The position numbers were made by a program, and so were the translations under genes. Positions 3,039 through 60,850 of a stretch of 64,000 bases of DNA are shown one piece after another. The notes under the pieces were generated by a model. The model searched no databases and had not been told where the DNA came from. It saw only the letters and a program-made list of their open reading frames with translations. Source of the DNA: Octopus sinensis (lineage: Eukaryota); NCBI RefSeq assembly GCF_006345805.1, contig NW_021826031.1, positions 1 through 64,000 of the forward strand, read 5' to 3'. Every line of letters begins with the position of its first letter. The first letter of the stretch is position 1.

Positions 3039-3375
3039 TACATGGGAATAATTATCTTGAATTTAGGGAATTCTATTTTTGTTTAGAATCCTAAAGACAA
3101 GTTCTCTCATTGCAACTCCCATTTCAACAAAATGTGATCAGGTGCTCAATAGTGATTATTCGCGGTGGCGAAATTAAGTCGTCAGCTGCATTCATATAGA
3201 TCTTTGTAGATAATATGCCATTAAATAATCAGAGTCGGGACACACTTTGTGCAATCTACAGTAGCTAATGAATTTGTAAAATACGTGAGGGCACGACAAT
3301 AAATATTGGCATCATTGTCCAAAGTAATAAGGCTGATATCTTTGTTCTGAATAAGACAAATAACTATAATTTTAA

Positions 3376-6300
3376 GGGGATCAGTTTGAAATATTTCTGG
3401 ATAATTGCGCTTTTTACAGCTCGTCTAAAACCTTTTTCTCTACTCTATTCTGGCGTTTTAAAATTTTCAGCAAAGAGGGTGTAATTAAAAAGATCCTACT
3501 CAGTTCCCCACGTGTGTGATATCAATCAAGCTCATTTTTTCAGTGGATCAGTTTGAAATATTTTAGGATAATTTGCGCTTTTTACAGCTCGTCTAAAACC
3601 TTTTTATATACTCTATTCTGGCTTTTTAAAATTTTCAGCAAGATTTGCGTAATTATAAAGATCTTACTCAGTTCTCCACGTGTGTGATATCAATCGAGCT
3701 ATTTTTTCAGGGGATCAGTTTGAAATATTTCTGGATAATATGCGCTTTTTACAGCTCGTCTAAAAACTTTTTATCTACTCTATTCTGGCGTTTTAAAATT
3801 TTTAGCAAGATTTGCGTGATTATAAAGATCCCTACTCAGTTCTCCACGTGTGGGATATCAATCGAGCTCATTTTTTCAGGGGATCAGTTTGAAATATTTT
3901 AGGATAATTTGCGCTTTTTACAGCTCGTCTAAAACCTTTTTATATACTCTATTCTGGCTTTTTAAAATTTTCAGCAAGATTTGCGTAATTATAAAGATCC
4001 CTACTCAGTTCTCCACGTGTGTGATATCAATCAAGCTCATTTTTTCAGGGGATCAGTTTGAAATATTTCTGGATATATGCGCTTATTACAGCTCGTCTAA
4101 AACCTTTTTATCTACTCTATTCTGGCGTTTTAAAATTTTCATCAAGATTTGCGTAATTATAAAGATCTTACTCAGTTCTCCACGTGTGTGATATCAATCG
4201 AGCTCATTTTTTCAGGGGATCAGTTTGAAATATTTCTGGATAATATGCGCTTTTTACAGCTCGTCTAAAACCTTTTTATCTACTCTATTCTGGCGTTTTA
4301 AAATTTTTAGCAAGATTGCTTGATTATAAAGATCCCTACTCAGTTCTCCACGTGTGTGATATCAATCGAGCTCATTTTTTCAGGGGATCAGTTTGAAATA
4401 TTTTAGGATAATTTGCGCTTTTTACAGCTCGTCTAAAACCTTTTTATATACTCTATTCTGGCTTTTTAAAATTTTCAGCAAGATTTGCGTAATTATAAAG
4501 ATCCCTACTCAGTTCTCCACGTGTGTGATATCAATCAAGCTCATTTTTTCAGGGGATCAGTTTGAAATATTTCTGGATAATATGCGCTTTTTACAGCTCG
4601 TCTAAAACCTTTTTATCTACTCTATTCTGGCGTTTTAAAATTTTCATCAAGATTTGCGTAATTATAAAGATCCCTACTCAGTTCTCCACGTGTGTGATAT
4701 CAATCGAGCTCATTTTTTCAGGGGATCATTTTGAAATATTTCTGGATAATATGCGCTTTTTACAGCTCGTCTAAAACCTTTTTATATACTCTATTCTGGC
4801 TTTTTAAAATTTTCAGCAAGATTTGCGTAATTATAAAGATCTTACTCAGTTCTCCACGTGTGTGATATCAATCGAGCTCATTTTTTCAGGGGATCAGTTT
4901 GAAATATTTCTGGATAATATGCGCTTTTTACAGCTCGTCTAAAAACTTTTTATCTACTCTATTCTGGCGTTTTAAAATTTTTAGCAAGATTTGCGTGATT
5001 ATAAAGATCCCTACTCAGTTCTCCACGTGTGGGATATCAATCGAGCTGATTTTTTCAGGGGATCAGTTTGAAATATTTCTGGATAATATGCGCTTTTTAC
5101 AGCTCGTCTAAAACCTTTTTCTCTACTCTATTCTGGCGTTTTAAAATTTTCAGCAAGATTTGGGTAATTATAAAGATCCCTACTCAGTTCTCCACGTGTG
5201 TGATATCAATCGAGCTCATTTTTTCAGGGGATCAGTTTGAAATATTTTAGGATAATTTGCGCTTTTTACAGCTCGTCTAAAACCTTTTTATATACTCTAT
5301 TCTGGCTTTTTAAAATTTCAGCAAGATTTGCGTAATTATAAAGATCCCTACTCAGTTCTCCACGTGTGTGATATCAATCGAGCTCATTTTTTCAGGGGAT
5401 CAGTTTGAAATATTTTAGGATAATATGCGCTTTTTACAGCTCGTCTAAAACCTTTTTATATACTCTATTCTGGCTTTTTAAAATTTTCAGCAAGATTTGC
5501 GTATTATAAAGATCTTACTCAGTTCTCCACTGTGTGATATCAATCGAGCGCATTTTTTCAAGGGATCAGTTTGAAATATTTCTGGATAATATGCGCTTTT
5601 TACAGCTCGTCTAAAAACTTTTTATCTACTCTATTCTGGCGTTTTAAAATTTTTAGCAAGATTTGCGTGATTATAAAGATCCCTACTCAGTTCTCCACGT
5701 GTGTGATATCAATCGAGCTCATTTTTTCAGGGGATCAGTTTGAAATATTTCTGGATAATATGCGCTTTTTACAGCTCGTCTAAAACCTTTTTATATACTC
5801 TATTCTGGCTTTTTAAAATTTTCAGCAAGATTTGCGTAATTAAAAAGATCCCTACTCAGTTCTCCACGTGTGTGATATCAATCGAGCTCATTTTTTCAGG
5901 GGATCAGTTTGAAATATTTTAGGATAATTTGCGCTTTTTACAGCTCGTCTAAAACCTTTTTATATACTCTATTCTGGCTTTTTAAAATTTTCAGCAAGAT
6001 TTGCGTAATTATAAAGATCCCTACTCAGTTCTCCACGTGTGTGATATCAATCAAGCTCATTTTTTCAGGGGATCAGTTTGAAATATTTCTGGATAATTTG
6101 CGCTTTTTACAGCTCGTCTAAAACCTTTTTATATACTCTATTCTGGCTTTTTAAAATTTTCAGCAAGATTTGCGTAATTAAAAAGATCCCTACTCAGTTC
6201 TCCACGTGTGTAATATCAATCAAGCTCATTTTTTCAGTGGATCAGTTTGAAATATTTTAGGATAATTTCGCTTTTTACAGCTCGTCTAAAACCTTTTTAT

Positions 6301-6552
6301 ATACTCTATTCTGGCTTTTTAAAATTTTTAGCAAGATTTGCGTAATTATAAGATCCCTACTCAGTTCTCCACGTGTGTGATATCAATCAAGCTCATTTTT
6401 CAGCGGATCAGTTTGAAATATTTCTGGATAATTTGCGCTTTTTACAGCTCGTCTAAAACCTTTTTATATACTCTATTCTGGCTTTTTAAAATTTTCAGCA
6501 AGATTTGGGTAATTATAAAGATCCCTACTCGGTTCTCCACGTGTGTGATATC
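3376..6552. repeat. 169-bp tandem satellite, left arm (about 19 units)
   Basis: Unit gatcagtttgaaatatttctggataat...ctccacgtgtgtgatatcaatcgagctcattttttcagggg. Repeated ORF starts are spaced 169 bp apart (4393/4562; 5571/5740/5909/6078). Confidence 0.99.
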
Positions 6553-8329
6553 TAGGGCAATTTAAGTTAAAAAAGTTAAAATATATGAAAATGTGTATTT
6601 TGGCTTAAAAGTAAAAATAAAGTATTTTTTAAATGAAATAGTTACTTATTAAAGAAAAAAATAAAGTTAAAAAGTTAAAAAAAATTTTTTATAAAGTTAA
6701 AAATTTTAACTTTATTTAAAATAGCGCGTGGGTGTTTAGTATGCCAAGAACTGCAAAAACAATGTATTTTAAGGCAAAAAAAATTGTTATTGAATATCCG
6801 CTGGAGTTTTTATTACGAGAGAATGGCGAGTTGCAATGTCAACTTTGCTTATGCACAGTCAGGTGTGAGAAAAAGCATTTTGTGAATTCTCACCGAGAAT
6901 CGAAGAAGCACTCAAATTTATTAAGTTTTACAAATTAATATAATTTTTAGAGAATAATTTCTATCAGCCTTGTTTGGACGAGTTACCCAATGATGACTGG
7001 TCAATGCAAGTCACTAAAGCATTTATTCAATGCGATATACCCTTGCATAAATTGACTATGCCTCCTCTAAAGAATTTATTCAAGAATACTTCTTTGCCTC
7101 TTCCTTCCCAATACAAAGCAAGAATGTGCGTTAAACAATTGAAAACTGAATATATTGTATTATTTCAAGAAAAGTTTAGGTTTATGAATATATAATTTTT
7201 TAGAAATCAACTTGTATTCGCCATAAGTGACGAGGTCACTATTCGTAGTCAAAAATTTGTTGCAGTTTTAATGGGGATACTTAAAAATCCCGATAAAACT
7301 TATTTGATTTCTTTCGTAAAAATTGATAAAACTTCTACCAAAGAAACAATTATTCAAATTGTTGACGATACGATTAAATGCGTTTTAATTGAAAGACAAA
7401 ATTTCCTTCTCCTAATAACAGATTCCGCTAAATATATGCTAGCAGGTTTTAATTTAACATATAATTATAGCTGGAAAGTTCTTAAGCTTTTATATCCAAG
7501 GTTATTTCACGTAACTTGTGTTGCTCATCTGATGCATAATTGTTCAATGAAAATCAGGACTATTTATCCTGAAATTGATTCTCTTATTGCATCAATTCAA
7601 GCGGCAATAACAAAAAATAACAAGAGAAAACGACTATTTACGAAATTGGAATTCCACCTCATGTAGTTTTAACTAGATGGGGTACTTGGCTAACTGCTGC
7701 ATTTTATTATGCAAAAAATTTAATACATGTGATAAACATTTTCAAAACAATTCCTGATGATGGAATCATTGTTCAGGCTGCAAAAAATAGCCTAAGAGAT
7801 GAATCTCTAGTAAAAAGCTTAAGTTCTATTGTTAGAAATTATTCGACAATTCCAGGTAAAACTAGTTTAATAATAGCAGAATTATTGTGCAAATTTGAAA
7901 GTTCTCACTCCTCAATAGAGTTAGCTTACAATGAGCTAAAGAATTTAAAATTTGACGACGAATCAGATATAATTGAAAAATATTTGAATGAACGATTACA
8001 AAAAAATGATTTATGTCAAATTATAAGAATGACAAATTCATCAATTTCTCCTGAAGAATATTGTATGCTTTTAAAGTGTCAGCCTTCATCCTCTTCCATA
8101 GAACGATGCTTCTCTCAAATTAAAAACTTTATGAGGGATAACAGAAATTTTAATATTGAAAATATAGAGAATTATGTTATATGTTTGTATAATAAATGAT
8201 TCTTAAGTTAAAATTTGTTAGGTTAAAATTTTTGTTTTATAGGTTAAAATTTGGTTATTTTTAGGTTAAAAAGTTAAAATTTTTAGGTTAAAAAATCGAA
8301 GTTTTTAGGTTAAAAAAAAAATTGCCCTA
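6553..8329 (+). mobile_element. Full-length hAT-superfamily DNA transposon (CGGBP1-like zinc finger plus DDE transposase), 1777 bp
   Basis: TIR tagggcaattt/aaattgcccta with a perfect 8-bp TSD gtgatatc (6545-6552, 8330-8337). CDS 6741-8199: C2H2 finger CQLC..HRESKKH, ISDE, ITDSAKYM, HVTCVAHLMHN, TRWGTW, SIERCFS. Introns at 6925-6950, 7180-7203, 7446-7470 and probably 7856-7876/7879; two 1-bp deletions. Confidence 0.95.
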
Positions 8330-9159
8330 GTGATATCAATCGAGCTCATTTTTTCAGGGAATCAGTTTGAAATATTTCTGGATAATATGCGCTTATTACA
8401 GCTCGTCTAAAACCTTTTTATCTACTCTATTCTGGCGTTTTAAAATTTTCAGCAAGATTTGCGTAATTATAAAGATCCCTACTCAGTTCTCCACGTGTGT
8501 GATATCAATCGAGCTCATTTTTTCAGGGGATCAGTTTGAAATATTTCTGGATAATATGCGCTTTTTATAGCTCGTCTAAAACCTATTTATCTACTCTATT
8601 CTGGCGTTTTAAAATTTTCAGCAAGATTTGCGTAATTATAAAGATCCCTACTCAGTTCTCCACGTGTGTGATATCAATCGAGCTCATTTTTTCAGGGGAT
8701 CAGTTTGACATATTTCTGGATAATATGCGCTTTTTACAGCTCGTCTAAAACCTTTTTATCTACTCTATTCTGGCGTTTTAAAATTTTCAGCAAGATTTGC
8801 GTAATTATAAAGATCCCTACTCAGTTCTCCACGTGTGTGATATCAATCGAGCTCATTTTTTCAGGGGATCAGTTTTCATATTTCTGGATAATATGCCGCT
8901 TTTTACAGCTCGTCTAAAACCTTTTTATCTACTCTATTCTGGCTTTTTAAAATTTTCAGCAAGATTTGCGTAATTATAAAGATCCCTACTCAGTTCTCCA
9001 CGTGTGTGATATCAATCGAGCTCATTTTTTCAGGGGATCAGTTTGACATATTTCTGGATAATATGCGCTTTTTACAGCTCGTCTAAAACCTTTTTATCTA
9101 CTCTATTCTGGCGTTTTAAAATTTTCTGCTAGATTTGCGTAATTATAAAGATCCCTACT
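8330..9159. repeat. 169-bp tandem satellite, right arm (about 5 units)
   Basis: The array resumes in register after the TSD; ORF starts at 8367/8536/8705 are spaced 169 bp apart. Confidence 0.98.
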
Positions 9160-9546
9160 GTTTAGAGATCAACTGTTTAGCGATCGAGAAAGAATTAGAG
9201 CGTACTATCGCAAGGGATATCCGCTCGAAAAACCATCTCGATTCGCGGGCGTCGCCTGTAATGGCAGACATGTGGGACCCGGTCTCCTGAACGAAGCTGA
9301 TTGCCTTACTGCCCAAGGAACCGGAAGTCTCAACCGCGAATGGAAGGAATTGGAACTTCTCCGTAACTGAGGAGTACTTCCGCATCTTTTTGCATTCCGC
9401 GGTTGTGGCAATAGATCCAGGAGCGGAGGCGGATATCAGCAGGTTCTGAGGCGAGAAAGAGTCCACACACGTGGCATCCCAGGTGAGAGGCTTCCCCCTG
9501 TTGAAAGGAAACACAGTTATCCCGTCAGGCCTTTTTCCGTCCCCCC
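9155..9546 (-). mobile_element. CRE-type non-LTR retrotransposon, 5'-truncated REL endonuclease
   Basis: GDGKRPDGITVFPFNRGKPLTWDATCVD...PFAVETSG...ERISLAIVRSN; the stop codon overlaps the satellite end. Confidence 0.85.
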
Positions 9547-10132: not shown

Positions 10133-10605
10133 TCATTGGCAGATAGCCAGAGTATTGCCTCTGACTATGGCTATAGATATTCTTTCGATTAAATACCGGT
10201 GCTCACACGGGTCGCCGGTAACCCTTTCGATTAATGAGGCAATGCGCTGGATTAGGGTCCGAGTAGAAGGCCCCTGTATTCCTGACGTCTCAACAGCTAG
10301 GGGGACAAACACTCTCCCATTCCCAATTCCAGCGTATTTCTCAGCTTTTCTTTTCTCAGCCCGTTCAGACGAGGCTCCAGGATTCTCGATGCATAATTTG
10401 ATATTCTGATTGGAAAAGGAGTTCACACACGTGACGTCCCAAACCAGACACTTTCCCCTCTGGAATGAAAATGTGGTCATCCCATCGGGTCTTCTGCCGT
10501 CCTCTACGAAAATCCCTGCAGGTTCCAATTGTGTGTGGAATCCAGCAGTTCGAAGAGATCGACAGATGATCTGGTTCAGAGAGGAAACATGTCGATCAAT
10601 TTCCC
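10133..10605 (-). mobile_element. CRE-type non-LTR retrotransposon 3' fragment inserted in a ferlin exon
   Basis: RHVSSLNQIICRSL...LEPAGIFVEDGRRPDGMTTFSFQRGKCLVWDVTC...ERISIAIVRGN; its 5' junction abuts the ferlin codons GKL. Confidence 0.88.
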
Positions 10606-11811: not shown

Positions 11812-13235
11812 CAGTGGTTCTCAACCTTTTTTTTCCGCGGACCCCTTGTGAGTAAATGAAAAATTTCGCGGACCCCCTACATATTTATTAAGTTTTTTGT
11901 CAAAAAAATTTTATTTATCTAAAAACAAAATTTATTATTAAATCAATAGAGAAAATTAGTGAGAAGGTTGATATTGTTTTTTCGAGGCAATTTTTTAAAT
12001 AAGAGGCTCGGTTGTCGACAAGCAAACCCTGATGTCATCTTCAATATTCAGTCTTGCGCGATGATTATTTTTTATATTGAGAAGTGCTGAGAAGCCATGT
12101 TCGCATAAATATGTTGTCGGGAATATAAGCAACAAATTTAATGCATTTGCGCTTACGGAAGGATAATGCTTATACATTTCGCACCAAAATCTTGATAAGG
12201 CAAGTTTTTCATACAAATCTTTTGCGTTTGAATTATTGATCATGTCAACAAAAGCCTCTTCGATATTTTCATCGACCAAACGTGAATCAACACTGAATGG
12301 TGTACGAATGAATTTCAAATCAATTTCGTTCAATTCTGGAAAGTATTTATTTACTTCTTGTTGAAGATATGTTAAATGCGCATAAATAAGTTCGGTTATT
12401 TTTTTGATTTCAAATGCATGTATATTTACAGATTGTTCTTCAAAAGATTCAAACATAGTAAAATTATTTAGTTTTACTTTTTCTTTCCACAGTGTTAACT
12501 TCATCAAAAAAGCACTAATAATTAATATGAAACAGTTAACAAACTTATTTTATCCACAAAATAAATTATTGTTTCATGTCTTCCCTGAAGCGATTTGTTG
12601 AGTGAATTTATACGAGAGAAGACATCTCTCAAGTAAGCAAGTTTAGATAGTCATGAACTATCCATTAATTTCGAAATAAATTCCGATGATTTGGAATTGT
12701 TTTCGCGAATAAAATATTCAGATAATTCATTCCTCAAAGAAAAAACTCTGGCAAGAATGTTTCCCCGAGATAGCCATCTCACCTCAGTGTGGAATAACAA
12801 AGCCTTTCCATCCTTTTCAAATTCTTCGCAAATAAGTCTGAAAATGCGCGAATTTAAAGCACTCTTTTTAATATAATTTATGATATGTACGACATCATCG
12901 AGAACATATCTTAAATCTGAAGGTAATGTTTTTGCAGCAAGTGCATATCGATGTAGCATACAATGCATATGTTTCGTATCCTGGTTAGCAAGTCTAACTT
13001 GGCCTCTAAAGCCAGAATGAAAGCCAAGCATTGCTGGAGCTCCATCGGTTGTGCAACAACATACATTATTCCAAGATAACCCAACACTGTCAAAAAACAT
13101 AGAAATTGCTTGAAAAATATCTTCTCCTTTAGTGGTAAAACCATCTTACCCCTTCTAAGCTTGCGTTTTAAAATTTTCAATAAACATTGGTTAGCAATTT
13201 TTTTAACGACCACTGTACCATATGAGTACACTCCA
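11812..13235 (-). mobile_element. Buster/SCAND3-ZBED8-like hAT transposon, 3' half, degenerate
   Basis: TIR cagtggttctcaacc at 11812, preceded by aaataacc (central TA). TDGAPAM, HCMLHR, HTEVRWLSRG, KLAYL.DVF, FPTTYLCEHGFS. A conserved Trp is mutated to TGA; 30-nt intron at 12515-12544. Confidence 0.92.
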
Positions 13236-13778
13236 AGCAGCTCTCTTAAATTCCCTCCGTGTGGGGACCGACACCACAGTGCCTTGAAAATCTCAATACT
13301 ACTTCCCCTTATTGTAGATTATTAACAAATCTCGGCTGATCTGCAACCAAACTGCACTACCGAAAGAGTGGAATCAATTTGTTCACGATTGAATGTAAAC
13401 GACTGGTGGGTGAACGGTTTATTACTGGCACTTAAGTAGGTTTATTAACACAGAATAGAGATTTGTTAGAGAAATGTGGAAAGTTGGTGACTGGTTGAGT
13501 CAGTTCAAAACACCGGACAGTGATATTTTGTTATGACATTCATGAAATAATCCCCTAACCCTACCCTAAACCCTTAAGAAGTACGCTCAGACCTTAAAGG
13601 AAAGGACTACTTGGCGTTTACTTTAGTACTAGTCGTTTTAAATATAGTTTGATCTCAATTTTATTTCAAATTGTGTTTGACTTGTTAAATTTCCTAATAT
13701 TTTGATGAGTTACTTCTATAATCCATTAAATAAGAAATTAAACGTTCTTTTCAAATTAGTAATCGCCAATTTAATGTA

Positions 13779-14383
13779 TTAAAGCAACTTATTAATATTT
13801 TCTTCGAACGTCTACTAAATGTATTATACACATCAACTAATGGATAATCTGTAGGCCCGAATCGAGCAACCGGGACACCGTCAGAATCAGTTAAGAACTT
13901 AGTAAAGTTCCATTTAATAGCACTGAGTGGAATATACATATAACGTACTTGACAATTGTACCTTCAAGTTTATTTTTTAGGAGTTTGAAGAGCGGATGAG
14001 TTGAGTTTCCATTGACATTTACTTTCGCGAATAATTCATAATTTTTACACTCTCCCAAAAAGTTTTTTACGAAACTCTTTGTTTCTTCAATTTCAGAAAA
14101 TTCCTAAAATTTTTTAAAGATGGAAACTTGATTCAAGAATTGGCCGCTTGGAAATAGAAGAAGCTTGAAATTTTTTTCTGCAAGTTTGTCGATAAGAATC
14201 CTAAATTCTTGGAGATTTCTCTTTGCGAGGCCACATTTGCATGCGATGTTAACAACAAGACAAATGTTGCCACTTTCATTAAATTAATAAAAATAACTTA
14301 AATTTCGATAGTGGTACTTCCTTTCCTTCGCAGTTAGTTGTTGAGAATTGAAAAATACTTCCTTCTTTAATATATGAGGACAT
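13779..14383 (-). CDS. Cys-type (non-selenium) glutathione/thioredoxin peroxidase, 5 exons
   Basis: Spliced MSSYIKEGSIFQFSTTNCEGKEVPLSKFNGNICLVVNIACKCG...FPSGQFLNQE...FAKVNVNG..THPLFKLLK..AIKWNFTKFL..DG.PVARFGPT..INKLL*; GT-AG introns of about 24-26 nt. Confidence 0.92.
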
Positions 14384-15230
14384 TTTTGCAATTTTGTTCG
14401 TCAGGAACGACTAATTAAATATAAGACCATTACCACCAAGCGAGCTATGTGAGTCGTAACAATGTTTTGTTAATTTTTTAAACTAAGATAATTTTAATAA
14501 AACAAAGTTAAAAAAACGCTTTTCAGATATTCAGACGAATCCCAAAGAATTTTCAATTTTTACGTCTTCTTTTACAGTATCTAAAGAAAGTTGGAGAGGA
14601 GTCCCCCTGAAGAATTTCCGCCAAAATAGCAAGCAAGGAGGCGTTTTCCTTGGAGGCATTACTCTATCTGACTTTGCACACGGGGCATACTTCTTCTCTT
14701 GTCCAGAGAAATGATTGACACTGTTCTTTCTTATTATAATGAACAGATATTATTTGGGGTATCTGGGATGCTCATTTTATTCGATGTAGCAATTGCACTG
14801 GGCATCTCTAATCTACGCCTAATCGTACGAAGAATTGAACGAGCCCACAGACCAAAATTACTGCCGTGCTTAAAAATGTATGGTTCCGGAGCAGTGGCTG
14901 AACTTGTAAGACTACTGGTTGCCTTTTAGACGAAGAATGTCCGAAATAGCAGAGTGTTTGTCTCTTTAGTAGTCGACACATCTGGAATGCAGGAGCCTGC
15001 CATTCTTAGCCTGCTCCGACTCCTTGGGTCGCTTATAAAGAGGGTGACCGGCGACTTTCTCGAGCACAGTATCTCCCGAGCAAGTCTCTCTGCCTATAGT
15101 CAAAAATAATTCCCCGGCTATTCTCCTAACTCTTTCATTTTGAATTAATATCCAATTAACATAATAAAAATTATTTCATTGTCTAATAGTTACCAATGTA
15201 AATCTTACGGAGTTTTCCCTGTGGCTTATA

Positions 15231-17797: not shown

Positions 17798-20424
17798 ATG
17801 CTAAAAATGAAATCAGGACAATTTCAATTCAACGTGCCTGATGAAGAGCTTTGTATCTTAATTTATTATTTCAGTCGATATTTATTTTGATCAGTTCAGA
17901 AAAGGAATTGAAATATTTTTGGCAAAAAAGAAGAAATTCTCCGAAAAAATTATTTATTTATCAAAAGACGATTCACTCATTGTGTGCTCGAAACTGGAAA
18001 AGAATAAAACAGCCAGTTGAAAATTAAAAATATAAATGTTAGAACATTTCAGCGTGAGATCAATCGTTCAGATACGTGAAGGAATAACTACAGAAAAACT
18101 TATAAAACTTAAAGGAAAGACGTTTGTCGATGTTTTATTGAATAATACAATGTTAAAGGAAAAAAGATGTCTCTCAATAATATTCCGTAATGGGACTTCT
18201 CTCAACTTCATGGTTATGGGATCTTGGGAGGATCAAGTCAAGATACTTAAATCCCTACAATATATCATCAAAATGAGTGAAAAGTCAGAAAAAAACTTTA
18301 ATTTCAACCGGTATGTTGTATAATGAATGACCTGTTCTAGTTTAGTCAAGCGACAGTTTGCTCTGGCAGACAAGAACAATGACGGAAGACTGTCATTGAA
18401 GGAAATCACAATTCTACTCAGGGAGCTCAACACCAAAATAAGCTCTTCAAAAGTGAAACAACTTTTTGATGTAATATATACTCTAATTCCGTCAAGCAAT
18501 CAAAACTAGACAATAGTGTGGATGGAATGAGTCAGGAGGAGTTCTCCCACTTTTATGGCCTAATCAACGATCGAGAGGAAATTCGATTATATTTTAATAA
18601 TTATGCACAAAACTACGACGGAAAGCTGCTTTTATCCCCTCAGGACCTCCAAACCTTTTTGCATAGAAACCAGCACGAGGAGCGGCCCATTGTGTATTGC
18701 AGGAACTTGGTGAGTTTATTTTCTGATACATATGAGAACTATCTTACAATGCAAGGTATTATATTGATATATATTGCAGATTTCACAAGCTATTTGACTA
18801 GTAATTTCAACGAGCCCACCGACCACCAAATACAAGACAACATGGACTGTCCTTTACATGAATATTACATTGCCACGTCCCACAACACGTGGATCATTTG
18901 AATGATGATGTTAGATACTTGATGGAACATCAACTACACGGGAAGAGCAGTGTCGAGGGGTACATTCAGAGTCTTTCTCAGGGATGTCGATGTGTTGAGT
19001 GTATTCCATGTCCACATCATTAGTGGATTGCTATGACGGGTTTAGGGAACCACAGATCACTCACGGGGGCACTCTCACAGGCAAAATATCATTCAGGAGT
19101 GTCGTGGAGGCTATTAATAATTATGCTTTCGTTTCCTCTGAGTTCGCTCTCTATTACTGAGTATAGATATCCGGTTATTCTCTCGATCGAGAATCACTGC
19201 TCTAAAAAAGGAGAAAATCAAATGGCAAATATTTTTAAACATGTTTTTAAAGGTTTATAACTTTTAATCACACGATAACAGATAGACTCTATGTACCGAA
19301 TCCTAACATCAGCGATATGCCATCACCACAAGAATTAAAACTAAAATTTATTATAAAAGTATTCTAATTATATTTATAGATAGAATAAAAAATCAATTAT
19401 TTCAAAAAAATGTTGTTCGATGATTAATAAAAGATGCTCTGATTCAGTATTAATATTTACATTACCAAATAGTCGGATGGAGAGTGTCCACTGAACGAAC
19501 AGAAAAACAATAAGTCGTTGTCGTCGCAGAATGAATGTACGGACGCCTTATTTAACCTCGTTGGGTTAGTCAGTTCAAGGTTTGAAGGATTCCAAGAAAC
19601 ATGTTTTGTAATTGTTATCAAAAATAGATACTTCAAGAAAAATTTATTCCTTTTCCGAAAGTGTAGCCAAAAAATTAATTTTGGAAAGTCCAGTCGAATT
19701 TGCCAAATTGTGTCGTTCTGTTTTTGTAAAAGTCTACCCCAAAGGAGCTCGAGCAATTACGAGTTCAAATTTGAATCCCGCGCAATTTTGGGCTATGGGA
19801 GCTTCTGTGGGTTAGTCATCCTTTTGAATCTTGAAGTGGCTATTAATTACCAATATCCCGGTGATTCAACACAGTTTAACGAGGCACTGTTTCCGGGGAA
19901 CTTGGGGTACGTCCTTAAACCCGCATTTCTGAGAAATTCTGGTTTTTATTTGAAGCCCCAAATTGTAGAGACAACGAAACAAATTCCTCGGGAATTCCGC
20001 GTGAAAATAATAAGCGGGGTAGAAATACCAAATTGTGAGTCCAAATCAAATGATATTGTTGACCCGTTTGTAATGGTGACAATTTATGGAAGTGATAGCA
20101 CCCCCACCGATCTTTCTACTCACACAATAAGCGACAACGGTTTCACTAGTAATGAGTAAAGACGTCAGGCTTCAATCCCGTTTGGAATAAGGAGTTCTTT
20201 TTCCAAATAAAGACTCCTGAGACTGCATTTGTCAAGTTTTGTGTTATGGATTCTGATTTGATTGGCAATCCCAACTTTATTGGGCAAAGGATATTTCGAA
20301 TTATTAATATGAGGAAAGGTATATTTTGTTTTAGCACCCCGCAGGAGTCCGGGCCGTCCACTTGAGGAATAAGGAGGGTCTTTCTGTTGGGAGGGCCTGT
20401 ATCCTCATTGATGTTGATTTTTAA
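17798..20424 (+). CDS. Phosphoinositide phospholipase C, delta-like architecture (PH-EF-X-Y-C2)
   Basis: EF-hand DKNNDGRLS; X box YYIATSHNT..GCRCVE.DCYDG..ITHGGTL..PVILSIENHC; Y box KVYPKGA..SSNLNP..W.MG..VAINYQ..GYVLKP; C2 DPFVMVTI..NPVWN. Many introns of about 23-27 nt. Confidence 0.95.
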
Positions 20425-20702
20425 CAACCTATAATACTATCATCACTTTATCTTAATTTGTTTATTTTGGAGAATATTATTTTTAGTCCTTTTTGTGTCG
20501 ATTAGAACTATTTTGTGAATAGTCATACTTGATCATGGAAAAAGTGACTCAATTTAAATTCTTCCGTACCAGCTTTCTTATCGGACTTGATCTGACAGTT
20601 TTAAATTATAAACTATAATTTTAATAAATTTTATTGAAAAAAATACATTTATAAAACCTATTTTAGAAATTTAATATAAAATTTTTTTAATTGGATTTAA
20701 AT

Positions 20703-21335
20703 ATGCCGATGTTAAGAAAAAAGGGTACTTTTAGATTGTGGGAGTTCATTTTGGCAATTTTGAAGGATCAGAGATATATAAACATAATTTACTGGAGTGG
20801 TGAGAGAGAATTTACATTTTTGGATGCTGAAATGGTTGCCCAATTTTGGGGACTTCAGAAGAAAAAAAAGCAAATGAACTACAAAAAACTCAGTCGTTCT
20901 CTCAGGCATTACTACCGGAAAAATATTATGATTAAAGTTCCAGGAAGAAATTTTGTCTACAGATTTCATCCTCAAGCAAACATTAAACTCAATCTCAATG
21001 ATTACAATAAACTAGTTGAATTCCAAGATTTGTCAAACACATTTTATTGTCTTAAATCAGAAAATTCGGAGATATCTCCAAACGACGAAAATAATTATAA
21101 AACTGAAAAGCCGTCCAAATTTCTGTCTTTAATAAAAACATGTCAATTTTTACCATCTTCAGCTGAGTCACTAAATTTCAACAAATCCAAAAATTCTTTT
21201 AATGATTTTCTAATACTTCCCTGGTGTCCTTCTTTACCTAATCTTGATTTTCCGTTTTCTGTTTCTCCGTTTACACCCAGTCCACTATTGCTTTCTTCTG
21301 TTTTCCGATTCGACGTGGTACAGTTTACAAATTAG
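20703..21335 (+). CDS. ETS-domain transcription factor (N-terminal ETS, single exon)
   Basis: LWEFILAIL..IIYW..F..AEMVAQFWG..K..MNYKKLSRSLRHYY..KVPG..VYRF. Confidence 0.93.
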   Translation: MPMLRKKGTFRLWEFILAILKDQRYINIIYWSGEREFTFLDAEMVAQFWGLQKKKKQMNYKKLSRSLRHYYRKNIMIKVPGRNFVYRFHPQANIKLNLNDYNKLVEFQDLSNTFYCLKSENSEISPNDENNYKTEKPSKFLSLIKTCQFLPSSAESLNFNKSKNSFNDFLILPWCPSLPNLDFPFSVSPFTPSPLLLSSVFRFDVVQFTN

Positions 21336-23697: not shown

Positions 23698-25240
23698 TTC
23701 TATTATCTGGCTTACTTTTTTCGATTTAATTATTTGTCTAGTCATACATTTCATGATGATTGTGCGTTGTCATTATGACTATTTGTAGATCAAATATAAT
23801 CCATCAACTTTTCTATTTTCTGATCAACTTTTCTAAATGATCTTTTTTATTAATATTATGTCACTTTCCCGATCAGACTGTACAAAAGTCTTCTTAACGA
23901 CAAGCGTTTAAAGGTGAAAGGAACAAAAACATTTGACTTACTTATAGTTTTTGCATTTTTATTTTTTCTGTACATTTGAATTGTACAGAGAAATATTAAA
24001 TCCAAAGTCCTCAGGACTTTTTAGAAGCTTGGTTAACCCGGATATTAGCTGAAACGTGGCTGAAACATGGGAATAGCTTTCTACAATTGGGAAAGTTATT
24101 CTCATATTTGTAGGATAAAAACATTTTAATGGTCTATTGAAACCGGGCGAAGTGGCATTGAGGGAATGTCATTTTGTGTGTAACTTCCGCCAACTCGTTT
24201 ATTTGAGTCGTTATCATGTGACCAACGATCGGTTAATCTGAGGGCCCTTTGTTGGGCCTCCTCGTTTTGCCTCCTGTTGGACAACGATAACTGCGGACAC
24301 CATGATCCGCAGGCGTAGGAAATTGATGGTTCGAAGTATTGGCGGTAGATATTCACCAGTACCGGGTGTGACCCGTTTTTCCATAAGTCGGATAGATTTC
24401 GGAGGATGTTCAACTTTTTCGCATTTACGAAGAAGGTTGTCTGCGTGCGAGGAGAAGCAGAGGTGCATGTTGAGAGTTACCCATAGGACCGTCTGACTCC
24501 TGTAGAAAGGTACAGACATTTTATTCAGCTTTAAATCGACTGAAATCCTTCCCAATCTTTTGTCGGAAGTGAAGAGGGACGTGGCGGACTTCGCGACGTT
24601 TACCACAAGCCGGTTGTCCGTCAGCCATAGGTTCAGCCGATCAAGTTAGCTTGGAGCCTTTCAGAGGCCCTCTCGATATCCCGTGAGGCTATTACGATGT
24701 CGTCCGCGTATGAGAGGACAATGTCATTATTGTCGAGGGAGATCTTCCAGGAATAGGTTGAAAAGGGCCGGGGATAAGGGGGATCCCTGGGTACTCCGTT
24801 GGGTAGGAGACGAGATGTGGACTTGAGAACACCGAGGCACATCCTTCCTCTTCGTCCACTTAGGAAGTTGGTGATCCATATTTTGAGTTTCTGAGGAAAT
24901 TCAGATTGGAATATCTTCCTTGATAGAAGCTTCCTCGAGACAGAGTCGAAGGCTTTGTGAATGTCAACGGAGCAAAGCACGGTCTTTTGGTGCCTCGGTT
25001 TGCTAGCAAAACCGGTACAGATGAAATTCGACAATGATTGTAAGTACGAAGACGTGGACTTTGCCTCCTTGAACCCATGTTGAAAAGGTCTTTCGGGTAA
25101 GAATTCTTCTATTCTTACAAGAACCAGTCTTTCCAGGATTTTTGACATCGAACATAACAGAGAAATTGGCCTGAAAGATGCCGGGCCACCTTTTGGTTTT
25201 CCAGGCTTCAGTATCGGTCTTATTAAGGCCTGTTTTTATA

Positions 25241-27019
25241 CAGTATAACCTCCATTTGGGGCATCAATTTTGAAAAATTGCCCCAAAAATAGAGGTTTTC
25301 CCAAAAATGGAGGTCTGAAATTTTCTTTATTTTTATAAAAATTTTAATAGTTTTAGCATATTTTTCATTAATTTATAAATAAATAAAGTATTTTTAAGAA
25401 CATTTAAACATGTTTTCCACTAATTTTATTGATAATTAGAGTATTTTCAAGCAGAAAAAATTTTTATTCTATTATACACGAAAATAATCTGTTATTTTGT
25501 TTCCTGTTGCAGATTTCTTCATATGTATGCCAATATTTTTCTGAAATTGTAATAGTCTTTTAACGCATCGGAAAACAACGGTGATATTCTCTTCAAGGTT
25601 ATTCATTGCTGTTATCGTGTCCAAGTGTGAACAGTTGCATTCAGTTTGGTCATATATTGACTCATCATTATTTTCTTCTTCATTTTCAGCAATTACGTCT
25701 GCAATTATCGTGTCCAAATTTTCTTTCTCACTGTTAACTAAAAAATTTGAACTAGGAATCTGTTGCCGACAGTTATTAATTGTTTCCCAACAATTCGTTA
25801 TTGTTTCAGGATTTAAATTTTGCCATGTTTTTCCAACAATTATTATGACATGACGAAGATTTATTTTTTTTAAATTAACAATTTGTAACTCAACGTCCTC
25901 AAAATAAAGAGTAAAATCCAATAAAGCGTTAAGATAATTGGACTTGAAAGATTTAATAATACCCATGTCTAACGGTTGAATTAATGAGGTTGTTTTTTTG
26001 GGAGAAAAAACAATTCAATGTTGGAAAGATGGATATATTTGTGACAGCTTGCGTTATCAAGTAACAAAACAATTTTTCTCTTTTGCGTAATCATTTGTTC
26101 ATTTGTAATGGTGAGCCATGTAATAAATATTTCTGATGTCATCCAACTGTTTTTAGATGATGAATATGAAACTCCATGTTCTTCAGGGTTAAAGTTTTTC
26201 ATACAACGTGGGGATTTATATTTTCCTACTAACAATGGCTTCAATTTTTCGCCACAAGCACTGACCGACAAAAAAATAGTGAATTTTTCTTTACTCCTTT
26301 TAATTCCGAAACAATCTTCATCCGAACTTACAAATGATTTTGAAGGTATCCTTTTAATATATAACCCAGTTTCGTCGCAATTAAAAATATTTTGAAGACC
26401 ATATTCTTTTACGTATTCATCATACTTGGAAAAAAACATATCAAGCGAAGAAACATCGGAAGAGTTTTTCTCTCCACTAATTGTCTTAAATGACAACATA
26501 TGTCTTTTCTTAATTTTTCAACCAGCCATTGGACCTTTGAACGCCGAATAATTCAACATCCTTGCTACTTTGGAAGCAATATTTTTTAAAGAGGACCGGA
26601 CACAGGAATAAATTCTTCCCTGTCTTGGTGAAAGCCTCAAACTTACATTAATAAAAAAACTTTACTAATTTTGTACTTATCTACAATATCTCGTTCAGTA
26701 AGATGTTTATTTTCACTTAATTCCTTGGCAATTTTGATCTTTAACTCAAGACTAAGCTTACGAGCCATAACAACAAGAATACAAAAATTACACGAGGCTT
26801 CCAAATGAAATTTTATATAATTAATTTTAATTTTAATAGCAAATATGTATATAAATTAAAAATCCTGTGCCCCACTAGAGGTTCCGGTAATTTCTAAATT
26901 TGGAAATTACCGCATAAATTATATCCTTTTCAAACCTACAAACTAACCCAAAAATAGAGGTTTCCCCAAAAATAGAGGTTCCCCAAGCCAGAGGTCTGCC
27001 CCAAATGGAGGTTATACTG
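25241..27019 (-). mobile_element. pogo/Tigger DNA transposon (CENP-B HTH plus DDE_1), frameshifted
   Basis: Perfect 23-bp TIR cagtataacctccatttggggca with TA duplication; NCDETG, NSWMT, LLLDNA.CH, QPLDMGIIKSFK. Confidence 0.95.
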
Positions 27020-48289: not shown

Positions 48290-49604
48290 CTAGACTAGTT
48301 CGGAGGCTATGATAGAGTGACAAAAGTACCGTCCATGGGCATTTCGGTGATCTCGGTGGAGTAGAACTGTTCAATGTCACGGAGAATGATCATTTCGTCG
48401 TTGGTGACAAAATTAATGGACAATCCCTTTCGGCCGAACCGCCCAGCCCTCCCAATGCGGTGAATATAAGTTTCCCTGGACTGAGGAAGGTCGTAGTTGA
48501 CGACCAACGAGATCTGCTGAATGTCCAACCCCCGAGACCACAAATCGGTGGAGACCAGCACTCGGGTCTCCAAACAACGGAAGGACTTCATCAGTTCCTC
48601 TCTCTCCTTCTGGGGAGTGTCCCCGTGCATGTACGTCACCGCAAAGTTGTTTTTGACGAGTTTGTCGGCCAACCACTCAACCTGGCATGAGGAGGGGGGT
48701 CACCTTGGCCCGGGAGTTGCAGAAGATGACAGCCTGGGAGACGATGAGTGTGTCGTAAATGTCGATGAGGTGTCGAACTTGCACGGCTCGTTGCCCACGT
48801 TGATGAAGTACTGGGATATCTCGTCCAGAGTCAGTTCGTCTCTCTTGACCAGAATACGGAGAGGGTTGGTCATGAACTTGCAGGTCAGGTGAAGCACATC
48901 GGGCAGCATAGTGGCCGACACAATGACCACCTGTGTCTGTGGTGGCAGAGACCGGTATATCTCGTATATTTGCGGCTTAAAGTCTGGGAGGTCAGCAGAG
49001 GACATACTATCACTCAACATCTGGTCGGCCTCGTCAATAACGAACAACTTGAGAGCAGACGTGTTCAAATACCCGCGGGTGATCATGTCTGAATGAACAC
49101 ACCCCCTACCTATCACTCTCCCCGGAGTCCCCGACACAATGTGCTGTCCTTCCCCGAACTTGCGAATGTCCTCCCCGATGGACGTCCCCCCAATGCAGGC
49201 GTGGGCACGCAGATTCTTGTAGGAGCCGAGTGCCAGACACACCTGGAATGATGACACACTCACTCGCTGGATTTGTTGTGCCAATTCCCGTGTGGGGGAG
49301 AGAACGATGACTTGGGGGTCCTTGAACTTGATGTCCACGCAGTTGACAGCCCCAATGCAGAAGGCGGATGTCTTGCCCGTCCCCGATTGAGCTCTACGAT
49401 GGAGGGGTGGGTGTACTGGGCTATTATGTCTCTCCCCGCTATCATCGAGTGAATGAGGCCTTTCTGCACTGTGGAGGGCTTATCCATTCCGTATGCATAT
49501 ATTCCTCGCAGGATTTGAGGGTTTATGTTCATTTTGTCAAACGTCTGGACGAATACCACATCTTCGCTCGTTTCAAAAATATCCTCAGTCTTGTTAAAAC
49601 TCAT
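48290..49604 (-). CDS. EIF4A3: DEAD-box helicase eIF4A-III-like (one apparent 1-bp deletion near 48773)
   Basis: N-terminal [53 protein letters not shown]. Confidence 0.85.
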
Positions 49605-54225: not shown

Positions 54226-55980
54226 ATGCCTAAATTTTCAGATTTTAATCTCGATCTGCGAATATTAAAAGTGTCAAAATTGGTTGTTGTATTGACAGGG
54301 AATAGAAGACCTCGGATGGGCCGAGCCAACCCCAATCCAAGAAAAGATAATTTCATTTTGTGGTGAAGGAAGGGACATTGTGGCTCGAGCCTGCACTGGG
54401 TCAGGAAAGACAGGCGCATTCCTCCTCCCCATCATCCAATCAACCCTCTCCACAGTTGGCCACCCAAATCACCCCAAAGTGTCACTCTGATGACATAATC
54501 GGGATTGTTTTGTGCCCCACGAAGGAAATATCCCACCAAACACACAAATTCCTCAAGAAAATGTGCAAATATGCAGAAAGAGTGACCTCAGTCAACCTCT
54601 CGGACGACACAAGTGTGGAATCCCAGGAGTATGTCCTCGTCCCCTATTTAAGGTCGTTGCTGACGAACTACAAGCCGAATATAATAATATCGACATACAA
54701 GCCTCTACTCCACCATTTGCACTCCCAAAATATCCAAATCAACCAATCCTTCAGGATTTGGGCAATCGACGAGGCCGATCTGTGTCTGGCACTCCCACAC
54801 AGGAGAAGGAAGATCATAGAACTGAAGAACACGTATTTCAGAGACCCCCACCAGGTTATTCTGACCTCGGCCACGGTCGGCCGGGAGTCGTATCGACACT
54901 TTCCACTCAAAAACCCCGTGATTCTGAATTTGAATCGGTCTAATCTGCCACCCCCGTCCCAACTATCGCAATATGTCCTGAGTTGTGGGAATAAGGAGAA
55001 ATATCAAGTTCTGGTGGCCCTCCTGAAGCTGCGGATAATCAACGAGAGACTGCTAATCTTCCTCAATTCAGTAGAAAAGTGTTACAGGTCTGCATAACTC
55101 ATTACCCAAGACTGAAACTACTTTTGGAGCAGTTTGCCATTCGTAGTTGTGTGCTGAATGCTCAACTCCCCTTGGCCTGCAGGCAAGTCACGATTATTGA
55201 CGTGGCAGGATTAATGCTGTCGAACAATTCAACGAGAGAAAGTACGACATTGTCATTGCCTCGGGGGATTCCCTCAAGTTGGTGTCTGATTGTATTGGAG
55301 GGCGGGGAAGGAGGAGGAGTACAGCATGACCCGCGGGGTTGACTTCCTGGGGGTTGCCTACGTTCTCAATTTTGATTTCCCCCCTTCTTACACGTCCTAT
55401 GTCCATCGAGTGGGAAGGTACCCCATTGACACGAGTGTCAGAACTGCCCGGATGAATAGCAAAGGAGTGGCCGTCTCGTTTGTGTGTCCGAGGGAGATGG
55501 ACTTGCTCGAGGGAGTCACTGCGGAGATGGGGAGGGGGACTATTGTGCCCTACCCATTCAAAATGGAGGACATTTCCGGCTTTCGATACCGAGTTCTGTC
55601 CGCATTGGCAACCGTCACGAATTCGGCAGTGAAGGAGGCACGACTTGGGGAAATTAGAGCTGAGATTTTAAATTCAGAGAAGCTTACAGTTTTGTGTTTT
55701 GTGAGTGTAGAGTTTCTTGGAAGAAAGGAGTCGTGCTATGACCAAGTTGAGACACGACAAGCCATCGGGGAAGATGCCACCCAAAGTTAAGCATATGCCT
55801 GAATATATTCGTGAGTTTTGAATTATTATTTAGTCCCCTCCGGATATAAACACGTCAATCAAAAGAATATTTTTTCAAAGAAGAAAAGAAAAAGAAATGC
55901 GCATTTCCGTTCAGTATTCAGCTTTTCTTACGCACTAGAATAAAACCAATGTCCTTAAAACCTTGAAAATAACTAAATGA
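54226..55980 (+). CDS. DDX56: DEAD-box helicase DDX56/Dbp9
   Basis: FSDFNLDLRILK, PTPIQ, TGSGKT, CPTKE, DEAD, SAT, RGVDF, YVHRVGRTAR, FRYR..VKEARL.EI..EILNSEKL, LRHD, HMPEY. Confidence 0.95.
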
Positions 55981-58339: not shown

Positions 58340-60850
58340 TTTATTAATTTAAATTTTTTAGTATATTATTATATTTTTTATAAACAAATTAATTATGCGC
58401 ATTTATTCATTCACCCCAATATAAATGAATACTGCTACTTTTCTGAAATCATGGTCTACCTGCACTGCACCAATCTCCTACAGTTCTGGCATGTTCGTGG
58501 CCCATGTTCTATCGAGTATTTTTTCACCACGGTCTGTGCTAGCATGCTGTAACTGAGTTTTAAACATTACCAGAGAAAGCGTCCGAAAAAGTTAATACGC
58601 TCAATCCTGGATAAGAAAATTCTACGGAGATTACTTGGTTGTATATTTTCTTGATATAGACTGTGAGTGGAACGGGCTCTTTTTTAAAATCACTTTCCAA
58701 ATATTTCATAGACCTTTGACTAGTACATTGGCAAGTACTTCCTCCACATGACTTGAGGAGATCATAGTCGACAAACACTCCAAGAATCTTTTGTGCATGC
58801 ATATGCACTTTTTTAATAAATAACTTGAATCCCCTGTTTGTAAATAAGGTCAAAGAGTCTAATAAAGAGAAAATTAGCATAGGGGCAAACAGTTGCAAGC
58901 AATATCCTTCTGTATTGAAATAATTCTTGAACAGATAGTGCACTAAATAGCTCAATTAATAATAGTCTTGAGCGCGGTGATGAAATTTTGGAAGATTGTT
59001 TGATAAAGTCCTTAATGAGCGTAAAAGGGACGTTCTCGCAGGATCTTAACGTTGCACGCCCGTGCTTGCAGAGTGTCGCCATTTCGGAGAAGCTTCAATC
59101 CGCTGATAGTTTATGCCCGTTGTTTGATGTTTCGAAAATACATCTAAGCTTGTTGAAAGTATTGTGCTCTCTTAGTTTGTAATTTATGTAAATTAAGTAA
59201 GCTACCTAATAAGGAACTTAAATTAAGCATTATCTGAGGAAAACATGATAACTAGGGCAACCAAAAAATTGCACTTTTTAATAAAAAAAATTGCAAAAAT
59301 GAATTTTAAAAATTGTAAAAAATTGCAAAAATAATTTTTTTTAATTGTAAACATTACATTATGCAAAAAATTAACGAAATTATTTATTGTAATAGGAAAT
59401 CAAATATTCCTGAACATTTTCAGGTTTAAAGTTCCTCTCTTTACTAAGAATTTTCGTCAAAAGAGATATTGCCCTTTCGATAGATGCTGAACTTGCGCTA
59501 CATTTTCTGAGATGTGAATAAACTTCTGGCGATAGATTCTTATTTGAGAATTCAAGAATACTTAGTATTCCTGATTTCTCAAGCTTTTTTGATATATAGG
59601 ATTTTATGTCGCATGGATCTGATGTAAAGTCTAGGGTGTTTAGATCACCATAAGCTGTTGCAATGGAGTATATATACCACTGGTCATATATCTCGCCCCA
59701 TCTGTAACGAATAATATAAAATTTTCACGTTCAATAGAAAATTTCTTTATTACTTTGTCCACCTCAACACAAATTGTTGAAGTAGTAGGCGGATATATAG
59801 ATTGGTACACGATACTAAATGAAGATTTTTTGGAGTGGAGATTTTCCCAATCAAAGTAATTAAAAAACGAGTTCCATTGATTTGGGCTTCATCACAAACA
59901 AAAAAAACACATTCCCCACTATTGAATAACTTAAAAAAAACAACAGTAAATGAGTCTGAATGGTATTAATTTTATATTTTGATATTTCTTTAACATTTAA
60001 CCTGCAAGATGATTCAGATGGCAAAGGATATGTTTCCTGCTCAAAAAGCCGTATGAGGGAAGGATGTCTGATTTTATAAATTGGTATGTTTGCCTCCAAA
60101 AACGCTTGTGTTACTTTGATCCCCCAATCCTTTCGAGTATCCGTTATCGCCGAAAGAAATGTTTGTGAACTCTGAGATGAATTTGTCCATTCTATAAATT
60201 TAAATTCAAAGAAATACTGTGTGCTTTTAAATGTTTTTTTGAAGAACGGTGCGCATCAATAAAAAATTTTGTGTCACACCGTACAACAGTTGAGCAATTG
60301 GAGCAAAATAAATTCCCTTCACTGTCAATAACAAACTCGGGGAATTTCTTTGCATAAAATGAAATTTTCTGTGACACTGTCCTTTTACCCATTACAACAA
60401 ACAACTAAAACACGTTTTAATAATCTTTTACTTATAATTATATTATTTTTTAATAAAAAAATTTTTTTTTTAATTTAAAAAAATTGCAAAAAATTGTAAA
60501 ATGACTACAAAAAATTGCAAAAAATTGCAAATTTAAATCGAATAAAAATATAATTAAAATTAATGTCTATTCATTACTTTATTATTTATCGAATTTTAAT
60601 TAAATTATATTTAATTGCAAAAAAATGCAATTGGTTGCTCTAATGATAACTTTAAGATATAGTGCACTATAAACATATTCGAATTCTTTGGTAGCCAAAG
60701 AAAACAACACTTGTGCACTAACTGAGCATATTTTTCTGTGACTATTACATACTAGGGTTAATTGTATTTATCTATAAAACTCAAAATTCGATGTAAAAAT
60801 AATTTTGTTAATCCAGGAATTCAGAAGGAGTGATTCCTCCTTTCAATCAA
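58340..60850 (-). CDS. Unidentified AT-rich multi-exon gene, apparently interrupted by the hAT at 59253-60642
   Basis: ORFs at 58560..58955 and 58813..59082; removing the element and one TSD restores an open frame across the site. Confidence 0.35.
59253..60642 (-). mobile_element. Internally deleted hAT of the same superfamily as 6553-8329, 1390 bp
   Basis: TIR tagggcaaccaa/ttggttgctcta with 8-bp TSD atgataac (59245-59252, 60643-60650). CSNC..HRSSKKH finger, FVCDE, VTDGARYM; subterminal aaaaattgca repeats; introns at 60192-60217, 59919-59944 and 59655-59677. Confidence 0.93.

Follow-up and report, generated by a model that had tools for sequence, protein, structure and literature searches.

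The first 64,000 nucleotides (nt) of contig NW_021826031.1 (assembly GCF_006345805.1, deposited under Octopus sinensis), referred to here as the window, contain a near full-length transposon of the hAT superfamily, element 1, and, on the opposite strand, an internally deleted relative from a diverged subfamily, element 2. The transposase gene of element 1 is probably split by four micro-introns, which would have been gained in the lineage of the present host and would now make the transposon dependent on the host's short-intron splicing. The segments are taken as introns because they have GT-AG ends, host-like lengths and the character of exact insertions when compared with uninterrupted relatives; GT...AG ends are found in all seven of them (four in element 1 and three in element 2), with lengths of 23-26 nt.

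Removal of either of the first two putative introns of element 1 joins its reading frames directly, whereas keeping them in leads to a stop after ...SNLLSFTN for intron 1 and after ...EKFRFMNI for intron 2, the latter site lying nine codons upstream of the first catalytic Asp (ISDE). Splicing of intron 3 in silico gives YMLA/AGK, the slash marking the junction, which agrees with the family consensus YMxxAGxxLKxLYP, and one missing base assumed near 7478 (ggaaag) restores VLKLLYP after it; a second 1-nt gap is located near 7643 (acgaaatt), between RKRLFT and IGIPPHVVLTRW. For intron 4, the 24-nt version reproduces the homologue spacing Y-x2-L-x3-I-x3-ESS exactly, and a 21-nt alternative ending at 7876 would leave one residue too many. 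With the four segments taken out and two N placeholders put in, element 1 has an open frame of 453 codons ending in the TGA at 8199. An unbroken frame after splicing is thus reached only with two 1-nt corrections, and the element would be potentially autonomous if both gaps are assembly errors. An earlier note on this DNA had the transposase at 6741-8199 reading through once introns 1 to 3 are removed, which is true of introns 1 and 2 but fails at intron 3, where the frame as assembled is broken, and again at the second frameshift near 7643. The probable fourth intron that it placed at 7856 is borne out by the 24-nt segment there and by homologues that lack exactly eight residues.

Element 2 encodes its transposase on the minus strand, from an ATG at 60392 to a stop codon ending at 59380, and shares with element 1 the codon and phase of sites 1-3, the two proteins being ~36% identical over 306 shared columns. 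Its putative intron 2 could alternatively be 23 nt long, starting at 59941 with the 3' end unchanged. At site 3, a GT at 59680/59677 follows TDGARYMTS, its codon and phase being those of site 3 in element 1, and an AG at 59655, if used, would preserve the frame. Past this third GT, element 2 reads YSIATAYGDL, which corresponds to SSIELAYNEL of element 1, located ~450 nt farther along there; this coding sequence inside the third segment places the breakpoint of the internal deletion within intron 3, so that the 5' splice site alone is read as homologous and the 3' part as former coding DNA. Neither the CxxH nor the RW motif is present in the element, whose frame is shifted by 1 nt at ~59788-59800 (one placeholder base) and which, minus its three segments and with one N added, gives an open frame of 311 amino acids; judged from its sequence, it is a non-autonomous deletion derivative. 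The claim that element 2 has introns at the same three sites and phases as element 1 therefore stands for sites 1 and 2, and at the third for the 5' splice site but not for the 3' half.

Features of the two hAT elements and of the host genes used for comparison, in window coordinates
Feature	Position	Strand	Basis or remark
Element 1, near full-length hAT element	6553..8329	+	terminal inverted repeats TAGGGCAATTT / AAATTGCCCTA
Left target-site duplication of element 1, 8 bp, GTGATATC	6545..6552	.	sequence
Right target-site duplication of element 1, 8 bp, GTGATATC	8330..8337	.	sequence
Element 1 exon 1, start codon and C2H2 (U1-like) zinc finger ending KKH	6741..6924	+	homologue alignment
Element 1 putative intron 1, 26 nt, GT-AG, phase 1, 12% GC	6925..6950	+	frame joining
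Element 1 exon 2	6951..7179	+	homologue alignment
Element 1 putative intron 2, 24 nt, GT-AG, phase 2	7180..7203	+	frame joining, homologue alignment
Element 1 exon 3, first and second catalytic Asp (ISDE, ITDS)	7204..7445	+	homologue alignment
Element 1 putative intron 3, 25 nt, GT-AG, phase 1	7446..7470	+	homologue alignment, YMxxAG consensus
Element 1 exon 4, CxxH and TRW motifs	7471..7855	+	two 1-nt deletions inside
Element 1 putative intron 4, 24 nt, GT...CAG, phase 1, in frame, no stop	7856..7879	+	homologue spacing
Element 1 exon 5, catalytic Glu (SIERCFS), C-terminal hAT region, TGA stop	7880..8199	+	homologue alignment
Element 2, internally deleted hAT of diverged subfamily	59253..60642	-	terminal inverted repeats TAGGGCAACCA / TAGAGCAACCA
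Element 2 putative intron 1, 26 nt, GT-AG, phase 1	60192..60217	-	four residues past KKH, like element 1
Element 2 putative intron 2, 26 nt, GT-AG, phase 2	59919..59944	-	nine codons before CDE
Element 2 putative intron 3 remnant, 23 or 26 nt, phase 1	59655..59680	-	5' splice site homology
Host eIF4A-III gene	48331..49604	-	homology with human eIF4A and database eIF4A-III
eIF4A-III intron, 23 nt, GT-AG	49416-49394	-	homology
eIF4A-III intron, 21 nt, GT-AG	49263-49243	-	homology
eIF4A-III intron, 21 nt, GT-AG	49109-49089	-	homology
eIF4A-III intron, 24 nt, GT-AG	49007-48984	-	homology
eIF4A-III intron, 22 nt, GT-AG	48703-48682	-	homology
Second host DEAD-box gene, intron, 24 nt, GT-AG	55418..55441	+	homology

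The yardstick for host introns is a small sample of six introns defined by homology in two DEAD-box genes of the window, and against their 21-24 nt the 24-26 nt introns of element 1 lie at or slightly above the host range. A scan of open reading frames (ORFs) over the whole window, in which GT-N-AG segments joining long open frames were compared with decoy dinucleotides, was noisy and gave no excess at any length.

The intron sites can be compared with those of many relatives. A protein search with element 1 returned 36 matches, none exceeding 43% identity, and the full-length ones (~450-460 amino acids) have 36-41%; the protein database holds no near-identical spliced product, its best match being 41% identical. 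In addition, 91 related loci were collected from Logan, ENA, NCBI and JGI assemblies, which represent many different samples. Several of these relatives have a like architecture, with TAGGGCGA or TAGGGCAA ends and subterminal repeat arrays, and the ends of elements 1 and 2 recur in three of them (L001, L002 and L006); L002 runs on into unrelated flanking DNA and is therefore genomic. An alignment with 14 full-length homologues leaves introns 2, 3 and 4 without any counterpart residues, all homologues being without exactly eight residues at the intron 3 segment and the close ones likewise at intron 4. Single tblastn alignments cross site 3 with no extra residue in 81 of 84 loci, site 2 in 63 of 76 and site 4 in 56 of 83. 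The exceptions, among them loci with 4-9 extra residues at sites 2 and 4, were considered as micro-introns and rejected as ordinary indels in relatives of 25-28% identity or in decayed copies. Five truncated homologues (P0022, P0023, P0024, P0026 and P0031) were likewise rejected as intron-split, being frameshifted or interrupted elsewhere instead. No interruption, long or short, was found at any of the four intron sites in the 91 related loci.

Three loci from ENA/Logan contigs, L007-L009, carry an interruption of ~265 nt (about 1571-1837 in L007) between residues equivalent to ~174 and 171 of element 1, off all four sites, and either a conventional intron or a nested insertion could account for it.

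These comparisons bear on the age of the introns. It has to be considered that they are ancestral to the whole family, were once longer, shrank in this host and were lost in other lineages; the distance between elements 1 and 2 is as great as that of either to intronless relatives, and the shared sites could be as old as this part of the family. Such a history would, however, require many independent complete losses, given that none of the 91 loci is interrupted at the four sites and that the sole ~265-nt interruption sits at another position, and it is considered quite unlikely. The absence of longer introns from the sites in every relative makes gain as micro-introns likelier than shrinkage, and the earlier suggestion that the introns were held in or shrunk to the host's range is not upheld: no intron of any length occurs at the sites among the 91 relatives. 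Nor do homologues contain the segments as coding sequence, an outcome that would have spoken against introns altogether.

A number of observations weigh against micro-introns gained once in this lineage, and concern the segments themselves, the sample and the relationship of the two elements. As assembled, removal of intron 3 breaks the frame, both of its flanks sharing one genomic frame; the segment is open in that frame (GFNLTYNYS) and, taken alone, could be a coding insertion, as could intron 4, which is in frame and has no stop. The linker that contains site 1 varies in length, so that homologues test this site weakly. Element 1 as assembled has two frameshifts and could be a dead pseudogene, and only two copies, elements 1 and 2, could be compared. 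Neighbour-joining bootstraps unite the two elements as sisters in 14% of cases and element 1 with the intronless homologue P0001 in 40%. Quartet support is 0.70 for element 1 with element 2, 0.92 for element 1 with P0001 and 0.78 for element 2 with a second intronless homologue, P0002, and the quartet that joins each element to its intronless homologue (P0001 for element 1, P0002 for element 2) is recovered in 891 of 1000 distance bootstraps (89%).

The first group of these objections is the substance of an account that takes the segments for short junk insertions or products of slippage, left in two dead copies that make no protein. To the two frameshifts of element 1 it can add the frameshift and the large internal deletion of element 2, and the decay of other transposons in the window, namely the frameshift of a pogo element and the stop in a Buster-like fragment. 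Random decay, however, would not give seven GT...AG segments of host-like length, nor would it put three of them at matching codons and phases in proteins of 36% identity though the segment sequences differ, and removal of the segments gives exact colinearity with ~90 relatives. The 1-nt deletions, for their part, look like assembly errors, a deletion of this kind being present also in host eIF4A-III. On balance, this account is considered very unlikely.

The single-base gaps form a class of their own. The host eIF4A-III gene needs one extra base at 48774-48761 on the minus strand (gacacctc, cc read as ccc), and since this essential host gene has such a gap too, those in the elements may be assembly errors. 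A pogo/Tigger-like transposase at 25472-26499 (minus strand) consists of two ORFs, separated by a shift of frame within an A7 run (25988-26004), and no micro-intron was seen at their junction. All the gaps in elements 1 and 2, eIF4A-III and pogo are single-base deletions in short homopolymers, which suggests homopolymer deletion errors of the assembly.

The relationship of the two elements decides between one gain and two. Element 1 is 36% identical to element 2 and 41% identical to P0001, and element 2 is 42% identical to P0002. The alternative that follows from these distances is a separate arrival of each subfamily in the host, each then gaining its own introns at the same three sites, by some form of site-directed creation in a micro-intron genome. 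Beyond the quartet values and bootstraps given above, the subterminal repeat motifs produce the same pairing, the motif of element 1 (GGTTAAAA) resembling that of P0001/P0011 (GGTCAAAA) and the motif of element 2 (TGCAATTT) that of P0002/P0024 (TGCAACTT). On the other side, informative sites in the quartet are distributed 10:8:7, which is essentially star-like, and other quartets favour elements 1 and 2 as a pair, as do four rare substitutions at conserved columns that they have in common (W, F, T and the I of SIER), four being the highest count of shared rare residues for either element. The subterminal motif was rejected as a lineage marker, as motifs vary widely and that of element 2 recurs, by convergence, in a relative of 26% identity (L042). 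For independent insertions to agree exactly in site and phase three times would be very improbable with no known mechanism to produce such agreement, and separate entry with independent gains is regarded as unlikely.

The radiation is effectively a star, and a single intron-bearing ancestor in a fast-evolving host best accounts for the three coincident sites and phases. The earlier inference that the introns predate the subfamily split survives as the most economical reading, resting on a star-like tree and four rare substitutions only. There is a small but appreciable chance that elements 1 and 2 are not closest relatives and that each has intronless sisters elsewhere, in which case the same three sites arose twice here or introns were erased repeatedly on leaving this host. 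Were that so, it would point to site-directed creation of micro-introns or to horizontal escape linked to splicing, and introns of 24-26 nt would lock a transposon to hosts with an ultra-short-intron spliceosome.

That both loci are, or derive from, mobile elements is clear from their ends. In element 1, TAGGGCAATTT is matched by its exact inverse at the other end (11/11), the target-site duplication (TSD) is perfect (8/8), and 13 copies of the subterminal repeats AAGTTAAAA / TAGGTTAAAA occupy 6553-6740 and 8200-8329. The element splits exactly a satellite array of ~24 units of 169 bp (3370-6552 and 8330-9159; 94-97% matches inside each of the two parts), and 21 other satellite units serve as paralogous empty sites, each with a single uninterrupted GTGATATC, so that the 8-bp duplication was made by the insertion of element 1. 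Because its terminal inverted repeats (TIRs) and TSD are perfect, the insertion is recent. The TIRs of element 2, TAGGGCAACCA / TAGAGCAACCA, match at 10/11 positions, its TSD is ATGATAAC (8/8, at 59245-59252 and 60643-60650), and six copies of the subterminal repeat TGCAATTTT lie at 59253-59380 and 60393-60642. Within the window, exact matches to the 8-mer TAGGGCAA are confined to the ends of elements 1 and 2, and tblastn with the element 1 protein found no further copies in the window.

A host-like intron structure would also be expected of domesticated hAT-derived host genes that are no longer mobile. The TIRs, the subterminal arrays and the perfect 8-bp TSDs at both loci argue against domestication, as do the position of element 1 inside a satellite with empty sites and the nature of element 2, a deletion derivative typical of hAT families, and this possibility is exceedingly improbable.

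Membership of the hAT superfamily, as claimed earlier, is secure for both loci on the basis of TIRs, 8-bp TSDs and the fold of a homologue. The domain DUF659 (PF04937) was detected in all 15 of the family members examined (best E 1.9e-14), element 1 itself scoring 18.2 bits, below the curated cut-off of 34.7 bits; Dimer_Tnp_hAT (PF05699) was found weakly in 7/15 (best E 0.0027), element 1 being unmatched, and a U1-like zinc finger in 2/15. A sequence-profile search of the PDB gave no significant match. An AlphaFold2 model was made of P0001, the closest homologue at 41% identity and not element 1 itself, with a predicted local distance difference test (pLDDT) value of 90, and its top 12 matches in the PDB are all Hermes transposase (E 2e-9 to 2.5e-6, template-modelling score ~0.5), in line with an RNase H-like DDE core that carries an all-alpha insertion domain. 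The catalytic D, D and E, the Cys and first His of CxxH and the W of RW are (nearly) invariant in the family alignments and are all present in element 1. Hermes and hobo have this fold in common with the element family, together with 8-bp TSDs and YARNG-type ends; they differ in being intronless and in having a BED-type finger where the present family has a U1-like C2H2 finger and DUF659, and the sequence identity of Hermes to the P0001 model is 12-15%.

The zinc finger and the helix that follows it may resemble those of CGGBP1, which would speak for a domesticated origin. Subterminal motifs vary across the 91 relatives as NNCAxxTTT-like words, and elements 1 and 2 share the terminal 8 bases only, which suggests that the zinc-finger domain may be co-evolving with its predicted binding sites.

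If the segments are introns, the following sequence of events can be proposed. The introns would have been gained as micro-introns in the common ancestor of both subfamilies, resident in this host lineage, and inherited vertically within the genome since then. Transposase would be made only once the host's short-intron spliceosome has removed them, and the dependence on host splicing stated in the earlier note is a logical consequence, provided that the introns are real. Were intron 1 or 2 retained, translation would stop just past the zinc-finger/DNA-binding part, and the short zinc-finger-only proteins so produced could compete for the subterminal repeats; a switch of splicing between germline and soma, as once suggested for these elements, is speculation. 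Introns so short would not be expected to splice in ordinary animals, which would tie the transposon lineage to this host.

The identity of that host can be approached from the remainder of the window. The closest database proteins of its eIF4A-III are 61-64% identical, which is low enough to indicate that the host evolves fast, and an ETS-domain protein, encoded among host ORFs at 20691-21335 (plus strand), 18518-20159 (plus strand) and 27825-28843 (minus strand), marks it as metazoan. These host ORFs presumably also include phospholipase C-like pieces and immunoglobulin-like domains, an assignment made by eye only. The window is ~37% GC, with satellites and reverse-transcriptase ORFs of long interspersed nuclear elements (LINEs). 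Retroelements are frequent in it, which bears on the host assignment: ORFs for non-long-terminal-repeat reverse transcriptases and two related '...TWDATCVDSF...' ORFs lie at 24633-25148 (minus strand), 38127-39206 (plus strand), 9155-9514 (minus strand) and 10133-10528 (minus strand).

Among animals, introns below 30 nt are described only in myxobolid myxozoans and Dicyema japonicum, with medians of 22-27 nt (PMC13644364), a span that takes in the lengths of the transposon introns. The D. japonicum genome is 36.7% GC, with 49% repeats and many LINE copies (PMC6736024), and LINEs are said to be nearly absent from myxozoans (bioRxiv 10.64898/2026.02.11.705288). We infer that the host is a fast-evolving animal, for which a dicyemid is the best fit because the intron size, GC content, repeats and LINEs of the window resemble those of D. 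japonicum; a myxobolid myxozoan fits less well. Scans of the window with Rfam and for tRNAs found nothing.

A Buster-like hAT fragment at 11995-13100 contains, between DKI and SAF, a 30-nt GT...AG segment (12515-12544, minus strand). The frame would be restored were its length 29 nt, and the fragment has a TGA at an expected W; as read from the sequence, the segment may represent a micro-intron of another transposon family. Part of this fragment is taken in by a 1.7-kb stretch that is duplicated at 99.8% identity ~11 kb apart (1-1743 and 12756-14500).

Intron-bearing hATs are known from several hosts, including maize Ac (four introns), medaka Tol2 (three) and the fungal element restless (one short intron, alternatively spliced). 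These are autonomous hATs that need host splicing of the transposase mRNA, as is proposed for the present elements, with introns of sizes typical of their hosts. In contrast, the putative introns of element 1, at 24-26 nt, are shorter than any that animals are known to splice, dicyemids and myxobolids apart; over 90 relatives in the family are intronless, and the sites are common to two subfamilies that are ~36% identical. The Drosophila P element is likewise a DNA transposon whose transposase needs removal of an intron, IVS3, retention of which gives a truncated DNA-binding protein; it belongs to another superfamily, and the likeness is a hypothesis drawn from the coding consequence of retaining intron 1 or 2. 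The ultra-short introns of D. japonicum and of myxobolids are of the same size class as those described here, and the reports on them concern host genes (PMC13644364, PMC6736024). In term searches neither report was found to connect transposons with introns, transposable elements being mentioned once, in passing, in PMC13644364 and neither transposition nor hATs coming up in PMC6736024, and literature searches turned up no description of micro-introns in the transposons of such animals. Introns in hATs and control of transposition by splicing are therefore known; what would be new is the presence, in an otherwise intronless and widespread hAT family, of introns of an extreme size class known from just two animal lineages, at sites common to two old subfamilies.

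If the splicing is true, these elements would be a clear example of introns arising within a transposon, many relatives having kept the intronless state for comparison, and their introns (24-26 nt, 12-25% GC) would be natural minimal substrates for recognition by an ultra-short-intron spliceosome. For genome annotation, transposon finders that rely on reading frames would label such elements as broken. The importance of the case would grow with splicing confirmed by RNA or with a phylogeny showing more than one gain. Confirmed splicing would further suggest that a transposon can come to depend on the peculiar RNA processing of its host and be confined to it, a confinement that bears on horizontal transfer and on the control of transposons by the genome.

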